Shown here: positions 21,508-23,997 of the stretch, in pieces
How positions within the stretch are numbered: position 1 is the stretch's first letter
Layout: each line of letters begins with the position of its first letter
Assembly (NCBI GenBank): GCA_033442325.1
Contig: JAWQFM010000023.1
Span: 388,403-452,402 of the forward strand
Reading direction: 5' to 3'
DNA length: 64,000 nt
DNA from: Salpingoeca rosetta
Taxonomy: Eukaryota > Protista > Choanoflagellata
Program-made: the position numbers and the translations under genes
The notes under the pieces: model-generated
The model's database searches: none
What the model saw: the letters and a program-made list of their open reading frames with translations, nothing else
What the model was told of the DNA's origin: nothing

Positions 21508-23997
21508 ATGATGCAGACAGCGAAAAGCCAGCAAGCCGGGTCGTCCTCGTCATCGTCGACCACGGCAGCCACCTCACTACTCTCGGCCTCGGAGACTCCA
21601 AAGCCCCCGGATGAACCGCCGGTCGTTGTCTCAGACTCAGACTCTGGCATGGAGGACAACGGGCAGAACAGCGCCTCGGAGCCCCGCTCGCCAGTGAGTC
21701 CAACGCCGCCGCCGTCGTCGTCGTCACTGACCACCACCACCATCACCACCACGACCGCCGCGGCCGATAATCAACTCGGCAGCACCGTCAACAAGCGAAC
21801 CCCCACAATCACCACAACCACCGCCACCAAGCAGAAGCAGACAGGCCGTTGCTTTGGCCCAATGGAGTGCCTTGAGGATGCGCTGCAGGACCAGTGGTGG
21901 ACCACCCTGTTTGACGACATGTACCTCAAGACTGACGGCGACGTTGTGGAAGACCCCAGCATCACCGCCGACGAGGTCACCGTGCTGCTCAACAACATTG
22001 ACTTCCCGCCAAACGCGCGCGTGCTTGACCTGTGCTGTGGCCAGGGCCGCCACAGCCTGGAGCTCGCTCGCCGCCGCCCCGACATTCGCGTGCACGGCGT
22101 GGACCAGTCTGCCTTCCTCATCGACCTTGCCCGCTCCCGTGCGATGGCCGACACCACAGATGCCACGCTCGCCACCCGCACCGCATTCACGGTTGCCGAC
22201 TGCCGCAGCCTGCCGTTCACCTTTCCTCCTGCCTCTGCTGAGGAGGAGGAGGAGGAGGAGGAGGAGGAGGAGGACACGCGCTTTGACGTGGTGATGGTGA
22301 TGGGCAACTCCTTTGGCTACTTTGAGCGCGAGGAGGCGGACCGCATTGTCCTTGCCGAGATTGCCCGCGTCCTCAAGCCGAACGGCACCCTGGTGCTGGA
22401 CCTGACCGACGGCGCGTACATGAAGCGCAACTTCAGCCCGCGCTCGTGGGAGTGGATTGACGCCACCATGTTCGTGTGCCGCGAGCGGCAGCTGGCGCGG
22501 GACGGCCGCCGCCTCGTCTCGCGCGAGATCATCACCAGCACCACCGACGGCGTTGTGCGCGACCAGCTCTATGCGGAGCGCCTGTACGAGCTGGGCGAGA
22601 TGCAGGCGCTGCTGGCACACATGGGCTTTCCTGCCTGCAGGCAAGTCGACACGCTCACCGGCGAGGCGAGCGCGCGCGGCCAGGACCTGGGCATGATGGA
22701 GCACCGCATGCTGCTGGCAGCAACCCCAACAGCAGCAGTTGCGAGCAAGACGGCAACTGGTGTGGCTGGTGATGTCATGACCAGCGCCGTCACAACCCCA
22801 TCGGAAACCGCCGCTGCCACTGCAGGCGTGCCCACGCTGGCCCTCAACACACGCGAGCTTGTGGTGGTGACTGGCGACCCGTCCATGCCAAGCTCGGAGA
22901 AGCTCAACCAGCAGTGGAACCCGGAGGACCTGGAGACGGTGGCGCGCATGCAGGCGGCAGTGAAGCGGCTGGCAGAGAAGAACCGCACCAAGGTCACCTT
23001 CCTCAACGCCCACCAGACGCTCCTGCAGGACCTGGAGCGTGTCGCTGTTGGCGCCCACAGCACCACCACCACCAAGCAGCAGGAGAGCCTGCCGCTGGTG
23101 CTGAACTTGTGCGATGAGGGCCTGTTCAACGACGCGCGCCTTGAGCTGCACGTGACGGCGCTGTTTGACCTCAAGGGCCTGCCGTACACTGGCGCCGGCT
23201 CCGCATGCCTCGCCGTGTGCTACGACAAGGGCTTGGTCAACGCCGCAGCCAAGAGCATGGGCGTGCCTGTGCCCGCGGAGGTGCAAGTGCTGGCGCACGA
23301 GGACGTGCATGCAAGCACCGCGGCGACGCCGGCGTCCAGCGCGGTGCAGCGGGTGGTGGCCGAGGTTGGGTTCCCCGCCTTTATCAAACCCGCACGTGGC
23401 GATGGCTCTGTGGGCATCACCACAGGCAGCATTGTGCACGGCGAAGAGGAGCTGGTGGCCTACATCAACACCATCCGCGCCGCCGCCAACGTGCTGTGCA
23501 AGGACGTGCTTGTGCAGGAGTACCTGCAGGGCGAGGAGATTAGCATTGGCGTGGTTGGCAACCCGGCCTTTGATGCCGTGAGCGGCGATGTGGACCCGGC
23601 GTCCATCCGCCAGCTGCCCGTGCTGCGCGTTGACTACAGCGCGCTGCCGAGCGATCTGCCGCCCATCCTGGCGTACGAGTCCAAGTGGGATCCGTCCTCG
23701 CCCTACTGGACGGCCGTGTCGTATGCGCCCGCCACCAATCTCTCGCCCTCGCACGTGGCGCAGCTGTACAACCAGTGCTGCCGCCTGTTTGCGCGGCTGG
23801 AGCTCCGCGACTACGGCCGGTTTGACCTCCGCTTCAGCGAGCGCGACAACGTGTTCAAGCTGCTGGAGGTGAACCCGAACCCCGGGTGGTGCTGGGACGG
23901 AAAGCTTGCTCTCATGTACGAACGCGCTGGCCTGCCGTACGAGCAGCTCATTGCCGACATTGTCAACGCCGGCGCCAACCGCAGCAACAACCACTAA
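21508..23997 (+). CDS. Fusion of a class I SAM-dependent methyltransferase and a D-Ala-D-Ala-ligase-like ATP-grasp domain; intronless
   Basis: Methyltransferase motif I VLDLCCGQGRH, GVDQS, FDVVMVMGNSFGYF, RVLKPNG. ATP-grasp motifs LPYTGAG...DK, FPAFIKPARGDGSVGI, VLVQEYLQGEE, YESKW, DYGRFD, LEVNPNPG. Start taken at the first ATG (MMQTAK). Confidence 0.9.
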   Translation: MMQTAKSQQAGSSSSSSTTAATSLLSASETPKPPDEPPVVVSDSDSGMEDNGQNSASEPRSPVSPTPPPSSSSLTTTTITTTTAAADNQLGSTVNKRTPTITTTTATKQKQTGRCFGPMECLEDALQDQWWTTLFDDMYLKTDGDVVEDPSITADEVTVLLNNIDFPPNARVLDLCCGQGRHSLELARRRPDIRVHGVDQSAFLIDLARSRAMADTTDATLATRTAFTVADCRSLPFTFPPASAEEEEEEEEEEEDTRFDVVMVMGNSFGYFEREEADRIVLAEIARVLKPNGTLVLDLTDGAYMKRNFSPRSWEWIDATMFVCRERQLARDGRRLVSREIITSTTDGVVRDQLYAERLYELGEMQALLAHMGFPACRQVDTLTGEASARGQDLGMMEHRMLLAATPTAAVASKTATGVAGDVMTSAVTTPSETAAATAGVPTLALNTRELVVVTGDPSMPSSEKLNQQWNPEDLETVARMQAAVKRLAEKNRTKVTFLNAHQTLLQDLERVAVGAHSTTTTKQQESLPLVLNLCDEGLFNDARLELHVTALFDLKGLPYTGAGSACLAVCYDKGLVNAAAKSMGVPVPAEVQVLAHEDVHASTAATPASSAVQRVVAEVGFPAFIKPARGDGSVGITTGSIVHGEEELVAYINTIRAAANVLCKDVLVQEYLQGEEISIGVVGNPAFDAVSGDVDPASIRQLPVLRVDYSALPSDLPPILAYESKWDPSSPYWTAVSYAPATNLSPSHVAQLYNQCCRLFARLELRDYGRFDLRFSERDNVFKLLEVNPNPGWCWDGKLALMYERAGLPYEQLIADIVNAGANRSNNH

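Follow-up and report, generated by a model that had tools for sequence, protein, structure and literature searches.

A candidate ligate-and-methylate enzyme: a methyltransferase–ATP-grasp ligase fusion in Salpingoeca rosetta and its widespread, uncharacterised family

A single intronless gene of the choanoflagellate Salpingoeca rosetta joins a class I S-adenosylmethionine (SAM)-dependent methyltransferase to an ATP-grasp ligase that resembles D-alanine–D-alanine ligase (Ddl). The gene lies at positions 21508-23997 of the forward strand in a 64,000-nucleotide stretch of contig JAWQFM010000023.1 (assembly GCA_033442325.1, positions 388,403 to 452,402; hereafter the window), and we are highly confident of both its structure and its family identity. 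On balance, we consider it somewhat probable that the protein is a bifunctional enzyme that builds, within one polypeptide, a small N-methylated metabolite of the aminoacyl amide or dipeptide type. In the proposed mechanism, the ligase domain would use ATP and Mg to activate a substrate carboxylate as its acyl phosphate and would join this to an amine to give an amide, in pockets unlike those of a D-Ala-D-Ala ligase. The methyltransferase domain would use SAM to methylate, most likely at nitrogen, either the substrate or the product of the ligase, yielding a small methylated aminoacyl amide or dipeptide-like compound. Ligation and methylation of a small amine or amino acid is plausible, with a methylated amide, dipeptide or osmolyte as the putative product. 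We infer, rather than observe, the choice of nitrogen over oxygen, carbon or sulphur, the sharing of one molecule by the two domains, a small molecule rather than a protein as substrate, and any cellular role.

The ligase half is predicted to be catalytically active as an ATP-grasp enzyme, but with a specificity that differs from that of Ddl and is strongly conserved in the family. Pfam Dala_Dala_lig_C matches residues 583-819 (E 6e-22), and the closest solved sequences in a PDB sequence search are Ddl enzymes (E ~1e-12). An AlphaFold2 (AF2) model of residues 440-829, built from 75 homologues, has a predicted local distance difference test score (pLDDT) of 93.5, and its top 50 Foldseek matches in the PDB are all Ddl, DdlA, DdlB or D-Ala-D-Lac ligases that cover the three subdomains, with template modelling (TM) scores on the target of ~0.7-0.84. 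In the HMMER alignment with E. coli DdlB, residues K97, K144, E180 and K215 correspond to K574, K627, E671 and K726, and R255, D257, E270 and N272 to R771, D773, E787 and N789; all eight are invariant or nearly so across the family (75 and 37 homologues). In DdlB these residues bind ATP, Mg2+ and the acyl-phosphate and tetrahedral intermediates. The intact catalytic motifs reported by a first-pass annotation of this DNA are borne out, with the ATP, Mg and catalytic residues of DdlB all retained.

The substrate-binding residues are another matter. D-alanine is bound in DdlB by the Glu15 motif, Ser150, Tyr216 and Ser281/Leu282. At the position of the Ddl GGxSxEhxVS (Glu15) motif, the protein carries VVVTGDPSMPSSEKL (residues 452-466), which fits the family consensus GDPxLPDxxK; this replacement of GGxSxExxVS had also been noticed beforehand and is correct. 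Ser150 has become Gly, Tyr216 has become Trp, and the Ser281/Leu282 loop is GWCWDGK, invariant in the family. The family-specific motifs of the ligase are GDPxLPDxxK (456-465), NLCDEG (533-538), ESKW (724-727) and NPNPGWCWDGK (789-799). NCBIfam Ddl models match residues 549-820, and every Ddl/Van equivalog model scores far under its own cutoff (e.g. TIGR01205, 90.4 bits vs a cutoff of 245.65). Since neither the defining substrate residues nor the family cutoff is present or reached, the ligase half is, as judged from its sequence, outside the true Ddl family.

The methyltransferase half is recognised by Pfam Methyltransf_25 at residues 172-293 (E 2e-16), with Methyltransf_25, Methyltransf_31 and Methyltransf_11 all above cutoff over residues ~166-303. 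Its motifs are WW..Y.KTDGDVVED (130-149), LDLCCGQGRH (173-182), D199, D231 and MGNSFGYF (265-272), together with the cap motifs RSWEWID...VCRER...LYAERLY; LDLCCGQGRH, D199, D231 and GNSF, which include the SAM-binding motifs, are invariant in 60 homologues. This half thus shows the marks of a class I enzyme, a Rossmann-like seven-strand fold (as modelled) with a glycine-rich SAM motif and an acidic residue for ribose binding. The AF2 model of residues 112-432 has a pLDDT of 90, and a low-pLDDT block at model residues ~131-146 corresponds to an insertion of 12 glutamates. The closest solved sequence, in a match that includes the cap region, is PDB 9RI2 (E 6e-22). This is NmbA, an enzyme that adds a methyl group to the amino nitrogen of the cysteine in bacillithiol (BSH); the paper that describes it reports no eukaryote with the BSH pathway (PMC12719100). 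The nearest structures by Foldseek are CypM, CcbJ, TylM1, DesVI, CalS10, KedS8 and NmbA, and most of the structural neighbours listed are amine N-methyltransferases. A methyltransferase homologue encoded by a split gene (see below) scores best against the daptide amine methyltransferase, below cutoff. We infer that amine N-methylation is the most likely chemistry of this domain. The glycine/sarcosine N-methyltransferase likeness first proposed for it survives as far as the class of amine N-methyltransferases; glycine N-methyltransferase (GNMT) itself is distant, at rank 48-50, with NmbA, CypM and CcbJ closer.

The fusion is widespread. Full-length fusions account for 4,391 matches among 8,000 candidates scored; a separate search gave 197 clusters at 50% identity with E<=1e-30, and relatives occur in at least 573 species-representative prokaryotic genomes. 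This bears out the first-pass statement that similar fusions exist, uncharacterised, in prokaryotes. Prokaryotic hosts belong to the Planctomycetota, Alpha-, Beta- and Gammaproteobacteria, Myxococcota, Nitrospirota/Nitrospinota, Sumerlaeota, Hydrogenedentota, Omnitrophota and Parachlamydiales, and include anammox bacteria and archaea; Hyphomicrobium zavarzinii and Methylohalomonas lacus are cultured examples. Bacterial fusions are ~620-700 amino acids (aa) long, align from query residue ~114 and are 42-45% identical. Among the choanoflagellates, Barroeca monosierra, Monosiga brevicollis and Choanoeca flexa carry the gene in addition to S. rosetta (four genera). Fungal holders comprise Rozella allomycis, Blastocladiomycota (Blastocladiella, Catenaria, Paraphysoderma and Coelomomyces), Olpidium, Gonapodya and more than 25 genera of chytrids, Batrachochytrium included, and an Atlas search returned a divergent cluster of 547-aa fusions in Ascomycota. 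Database labels of family members read only 'methyltransferase domain-containing' or 'D-alanine--D-alanine ligase', and we found no publication on the fusion in the full-text literature or in papers on choanoflagellate horizontal gene transfer (HGT) and gene loss.

Support for functional coupling of the two domains comes from split genes and from the trees. At one prokaryotic locus (L009), a 282-aa methyltransferase gene lies directly upstream of a 346-aa ligase gene, in the same order as in the fusion; at another (L008), genes for a ligase, a SET-domain protein and a methyltransferase stand in a row. Both split methyltransferases fall inside the family tree. Trees built from the methyltransferase columns and from the ligase columns are congruent with the whole-protein tree. 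A kept order, adjacent split genes and agreeing domain trees are what is usually seen for enzymes of a single pathway, and the two domains probably belong to one.

Each domain is also found with other partners. In fungi, Mortierellomycota methyltransferases are monophyletic and nested in the fungal fusion clade (96 SH-aLRT, the Shimodaira–Hasegawa-like approximate likelihood ratio test), and no stand-alone fungal ligase is among the matches listed. Ascomycota with the methyltransferase at the N-terminus of a ~560-650-aa protein are Penicillium atrosanguineum, Oculimacula, Pseudogymnoascus, Moelleriella and Cordyceps (proteins P0432, P0434, P0452, P0459, P0492 and P0494), some of which end in a SET or SET/MYND domain (P0432, P0434). 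One protein of this type, filed under the liverwort Calypogeia fissa, groups within the fungal sequences; either that assembly contains fungal DNA, it would seem, or the gene was transferred. The ligase in turn occurs alone or with GNAT (P0496), leucine-rich repeat (LRR; P0425) or prolyl oligopeptidase (P0475) partners. P0425 comes from a metagenome-assembled genome of Lokiarchaeia and is a 1210-aa protein with leucine-rich repeats followed by the ligase domain. In Monosiga, the orthologue of our gene, MONBRDRAFT_25176, stands head-to-head, at ~1.2 kb, with MONBRDRAFT_25175 (P0475; locus L010:1-5527, CH991550.1), which encodes a 1210-aa protein consisting of a divergent, paralogous Ddl-like ATP-grasp domain, the beta-propeller of a prolyl oligopeptidase (S9) and its catalytic domain. 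These two genes may form a cluster in a eukaryote; a neighbour combining ATP-grasp and prolyl oligopeptidase domains was sought in the window and is absent from it. Because the methyltransferase is found alone or fused to SET, it can apparently work without the ligase.

Roughly 85 prokaryotic neighbourhoods were examined in total, and the open reading frames (ORFs) of 80 GTDB loci were clustered. No conserved bacterial operon emerged, with no partner present in more than 15 of the 80 loci. The commonest neighbours reflect lineage synteny, as in the arrangement guaB-rsmB-[gene]-guaA of Hyphomicrobiaceae and the rluD/sigma factor context of Stellaceae. A smaller signal crosses phyla. An AstE/AspA-type amidohydrolase (DoeB-like, sub-cutoff) adjoins the gene in six loci of Planctomycetota and Gammaproteobacteria, and a gene for a LysA-like pyridoxal phosphate-dependent decarboxylase follows closely downstream in five alphaproteobacterial loci and is likewise found close to the split genes of L009; the sixth member of this LysA-like cluster is 7 kb away in a planctomycete. 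These genes weakly favour a role in small amine or amino-acid metabolism. A MurD gene beside the split genes of L008 was considered as a pathway link and discarded, being a genuine housekeeping MurD that scores above its own cutoff.

Several observations weigh against a small-molecule pathway of ligation and N-methylation, or against the history that we propose for it below. The literature yielded no substrate or product for any family member, and the bacterial neighbours are mostly unrelated housekeeping genes. The C-methyltransferases PsmD, SeMT and SgMT are also close structural neighbours, and several indole C-methyltransferases rank high, so that N-methylation is not assured. Mortierellomycota (Mortierella, Podila, Linnemannia, Actinomortierella and others) keep the methyltransferase only, at ~330-380 aa (P0244-P0340), and in metagenomes and some Ascomycota SET replaces the ligase in methyltransferase-SET fusions; SET, prolyl oligopeptidase and LRR partners could equally mean peptide or protein substrates. 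Finally, the root of the tree was not inferred, and eukaryotic holders beyond those named were not found among the matches listed.

Peptide or protein modification is the alternative that survives best, although we regard it as unlikely. Here an amino acid would be joined by the ATP-grasp domain to a carboxylate of a protein or peptide, in the manner of RimK or tubulin ligases, and the methyltransferase would act on a peptide N-terminus or side chain, as CypM does. CypM ranks near the top of the neighbours by both structure and sequence; relatives of one or the other domain are fused or linked to SET domains, which are usually protein-lysine methylases, to leucine-rich repeats and, in Monosiga 25175, to a prolyl oligopeptidase; and the bacteria show no conserved biosynthetic operon. 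Against this, the ligase is nearest to Ddl, a small-molecule dipeptide ligase, in both sequence and fold, and not to RimK or tubulin tyrosine ligase (TTL); no recurrent neighbour resembling a precursor peptide was found; and the neighbours that do recur across phyla are small-molecule enzymes, namely the DoeB-like deacylase and the LysA-like decarboxylase. A small methylated aminoacyl amide or dipeptide-like metabolite remains the product that we favour.

A bolder version of that product can be imagined, which we think rather unlikely to be right. In this version the aminoacyl amide or dipeptide would be N-methylated, perhaps fully so and betaine-like, and new to science: a metabolite conserved in bacteria, archaea, zoosporic fungi and choanoflagellates but lost in animals and most higher fungi. 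A methylated ammonium group would sit in an aromatic box built from the invariant Trp-rich loops ESKW, SPYW and GWCWDGK of the ligase, and the SET partners of bacteria and Ascomycota would complete the methylation. That the invariant Trp residues replacing the Ddl substrate residues serve in methylated-ammonium recognition is speculation.

It is doubtful that the two domains are independent enzymes that act on different molecules and are fused only for co-expression. The existence of the methyltransferase alone (in Mortierellomycota and many prokaryotes) or with other partners, and of the ligase alone or with GNAT or peptidase partners, would be expected of such enzymes. It is offset by a fusion order that stays the same in hundreds of species from all three domains of life, by the recurrence of the pair as adjacent split genes, and by the congruence of the domain trees. 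Still less probable, to the point of being nearly dismissed, is that the protein functions as a D-Ala-D-Ala or D-Ala-D-X ligase, or as a mycosporine-like amino acid ligase of the MysD type (MysD is a Ddl homologue). The best Pfam, NCBIfam, PDB and fold matches are indeed all Ddl/Van ligases, but the Glu15 motif, Ser150 and Ser281/Leu282 are absent, Tyr216 is Trp, the score is 90 bits vs a 245-bit cutoff, and the hosts include eukaryotes that lack peptidoglycan. No EEVS/DHQS, O-methyltransferase or MysC-type gene is among the called or recurrent neighbours at the roughly 85 prokaryotic loci. True Ddl and MysD were rejected on residues, score and genomic context, MysD being judged by gene context. 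A DMSP (dimethylsulfoniopropionate) synthase of the DsyGD type was likewise set aside, as its C-terminal domain is ureidoglycolate-lyase-like and not ATP-grasp.

The history of the fusion was examined in a quick maximum likelihood (ML) tree of 74 full-length proteins and in a careful ML tree of 46 rows and 643 columns (LG+C20 with posterior mean site frequencies, PMSF; long branches removed), with branch supports given as ultrafast bootstrap/SH-aLRT. In the careful tree, as in the quick one, a well-supported branch (99/97) divides all eukaryotes from the prokaryotes, and the choanoflagellates (100/99) are sister to the fungi (100/99). Within the fungi, Rozella, with a metagenomic sequence, branches first, followed by blastoclads, Olpidium, and the chytrids with Gonapodya. 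This order matches the accepted species tree. The ligase tree places further prokaryotic groups outside the eukaryotes and the main bacterial set; its root is a midpoint only. The nearest orthologue is that of Barroeca monosierra, with 65-69% identity over aligned columns. Because the choanoflagellates are sister to the fungi as in the species tree, the fusion gene appears to be ancient in opisthokonts, and any transfer from bacteria would predate their split. These trees are most simply read as follows: the fusion has a prokaryotic origin, already existed when choanoflagellates and fungi parted, and has since been passed down by vertical descent, with losses later on. We hold ancient vertical inheritance to be very probable; the pattern may instead reflect an early transfer between fungi and choanoflagellates. 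The Monosiga and Batrachochytrium orthologues have one intron each, near codon 125-150, and these introns, together with the base composition at third codon positions (GC3), fit a long residence with few intron gains and give no sign of recent import.

The first-pass annotation had pictured the gene as horizontally acquired. As a recent, lineage-specific event this is not supported, given four choanoflagellate genera, at least five early fungal lineages and a gene tree that resembles the species tree; recent HGT is contradicted by the trees. The same annotation had named broad vertical inheritance in eukaryotes with a known function as grounds for refuting it; the trees point to the inheritance, and no known function accompanies it. 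Recent HGT from bacteria, or bacterial contamination of the assembly, is almost certainly wrong: an intronless gene within an intron-rich genome, thousands of bacterial homologues at 42-45% identity and a GC content of 65% vs 55% for the window would suit it, but the closest relatives are other choanoflagellates (65-69%) and then fungi, the eukaryotes unite on one side of the 99/97 branch, the transcript has a poly(A) tail, long untranslated regions (UTRs) and eukaryote-type low-complexity inserts, its 3' end overlaps a spliced neighbour, GC3 is just above the top of the other long ORFs in the window, and the stretch is present in runs from six studies of the same organism.

The fusion gene is transcribed into a single mRNA of about 3.1 kb, which is polyadenylated and carries no splice joints (Table 1). 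Its ORF is a single stop-free frame of 829 codons plus stop in the ORF list and translation. The frame is open on the 5' side to 21052, and its first in-frame ATG is at 21508. The recorded protein, P0001 (829 aa), is identical over 100% coverage, so that the public gene model equals the ORF. RNA from two stranded raw-read runs (X22 and X23) and two contig sets was mapped to the region 20000-25900, plus-strand RNA being assigned by a first mate on the minus strand (the usual library convention). In X22 and X23, plus-strand RNA has mean depths of ~23-156 and is gapless from 20985 to 24333, covering both domains, and the RNA reads contain no splice joints within 21000-24345. The main cluster of 5' starts lies at ~21198/21199, with weaker coverage to ~20990, and untemplated A-runs after 24345 mark the poly(A) site. 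The RNA contigs are interrupted at the 12-Glu repeat (22237-22272). A single ORF joining a methyltransferase to a Ddl-like ligase had been claimed for this DNA and is confirmed by the ORF, Pfam, P0001 and a single transcript; RNA sequencing (RNA-seq), which could have refuted the claim by showing two separate transcripts or no expression, gave one expressed transcript over both domains.

Table 1. Features of the fusion gene and its transcript, in window coordinates.
Feature	Position	Strand	Basis
Unspliced poly(A) mRNA of the fusion gene	21199..24345	+	Stranded RNA-seq; poly(A) addition at 24345
5' UTR with poly-C run	21199..21507	+	RNA reads; no in-frame ATG before 21508
Coding sequence, intronless, 829 codons plus stop	21508..23997	+	ORF, P0001, RNA-seq
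Ser/Thr/Pro-rich low-complexity N-terminal extension, residues 1-117	21508..21858	+	Translation; bacterial homologues lack the extension
Class I SAM-dependent methyltransferase and beta-strand cap (predicted), residues ~118-425	21859..22782	+	Pfam, PDB match, AF2, Foldseek, conservation
12 Glu codons, lineage-specific disordered loop within the methyltransferase domain	22237..22272	+	Translation, low pLDDT
Ala/Thr-rich inter-domain linker, residues ~426-448	22783..22851	+	Translation; methyltransferase model of low pLDDT towards its C-terminal end
Ddl-type ATP-grasp ligase (predicted), all three subdomains, residues ~449-826	22852..23985	+	Pfam, NCBIfam, DdlB alignment, AF2, Foldseek
3' UTR; final ~120 nt shared with the convergent transcript's 3' end	23998..24345	+	RNA-seq
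Convergent neighbour, spliced several times: its 3' part (context, outside the enzyme)	24222..25583	-	RNA-seq joints

In the 5' UTR, a run of 11 C at 21459/21460 is one C shorter in 10 of 33 (X22) and 14 of 73 (X23) RNA reads and one C longer in a few, reflecting length polymorphism or polymerase slippage. Because a frame-breaking 1-nt indel is tolerated there, the segment 21199-21507 must be non-coding. Downstream, the convergent minus-strand transcript is delimited by a T-run before 24222 and by read starts at 24218/24240. It is spliced at least four times, with a joint at 25247/25503 that has CT..AC ends; contig X2 record 11 joins 24678/24952, 25006/25203 and 25247/25503 and continues past 25583. 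The intron-dense surroundings described at the outset are real as regards this neighbour, spliced several times in RNA reads, and they set the gene in the chromatin context of a eukaryote. The mRNA 3' ends of the fusion gene (24345) and the neighbour (~24222) overlap by ~120 nt, forming a short natural sense-antisense pair. In X23, reads link 24933 to 20845 (6 reads) or to 23130 (2 reads), with 10-16 unmatched letters between; these may be chimeric or repeat-mediated artefacts at CA-rich tracts.

Upstream, a further plus-strand transcript has its 3' end at 20197-20630, with a poly(A) site at 20630 and depth up to ~235, and a 383-aa ORF at 17263-18411 has no Pfam match. The window as a whole has an intron-rich look, moderately high GC and (CA)n/(GT)n tracts. 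The GC content of the gene is 65% vs 55% for the window, and its GC3 is 0.84, against 0.55-0.81 for nine further long ORFs in the window, be they genes or not. Large ORFs at 27325-28977 (+) and 9310-11028 (+) match a CBM_21 starch-binding module (E 2e-18) and Acyl_transf_3 (E 4e-18), respectively; seven other long ORFs have no Pfam match at E<=1e-5.

Both halves of the protein come from well-known superfamilies, and the fusion represents a very widespread uncharacterised family rather than a lineage-specific invention. With its unusual, near-invariant active-site motifs, this family is held by hundreds of prokaryotic species, early fungi and the closest relatives of animals, apparently without an assigned reaction; the amphibian pathogen Batrachochytrium is among its holders. 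Discovery of what the enzyme makes would enrich the biochemistry of opisthokonts and bacteria by a metabolite and a pathway, and explain a gene that animals have lost. More generally, the case warns against taking a lack of introns, together with bacterial homologues, as sufficient evidence that a gene was acquired horizontally in recent times. The function is directly testable in cultured hosts and in genetically tractable choanoflagellates.

Finally, compared with characterised enzymes, the protein would work like a Ddl-type ligase combined with a methyltransferase of the NmbA/CypM type. The ligase shares with DdlB, DdlA and VanA-type ligases the three-subdomain ATP-grasp fold (Foldseek E ~1e-21, target TM ~0.8) and the same ATP, Mg and transition-state residues; it differs in its ~19% identity, in its replaced D-Ala-binding residues, in being joined to a methyltransferase and in occurring in hosts without peptidoglycan. 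The methyltransferase is, like NmbA, a class I SAM enzyme; NmbA methylates the alpha-amino nitrogen of an amide-linked amino acid. NmbA is a stand-alone protein of 266 aa tied to the BshA/B/C pathway, and the two show ~25% identity in structural alignment with a TM of 0.44-0.61; the methyltransferase half cannot be assigned as an NmbA orthologue. CypM, CcbJ and TylM1/DesVI are the top structural neighbours of its model (E 1e-18 to 1e-15) and methylate primary or secondary amines of peptides, amino-acid amides or amino sugars, CypM being a peptide N-terminal dimethylase and TylM1, DesVI, CalS10 and KedS8 amino-sugar N-methylases. They are only 16-21% identical to it, none is fused to a ligase, and each belongs to a dedicated biosynthetic cluster, which the fusion family lacks. 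GNMT and the glycine-sarcosine methyltransferases share the FDxV...GNSF motif and are structural neighbours at E ~1e-14, and the bacterial glycine-sarcosine enzyme is a weak, sub-cutoff match of the split-gene homologue; GNMT is farther away than NmbA, CypM and CcbJ and gives no PDB sequence match at E<=0.01. As a functional analogy only, the proposed reactions would resemble those of carnosine synthase and carnosine N-methyltransferase, which are separate, unrelated proteins in animals: an ATP-grasp amide ligation followed by SAM-dependent N-methylation.

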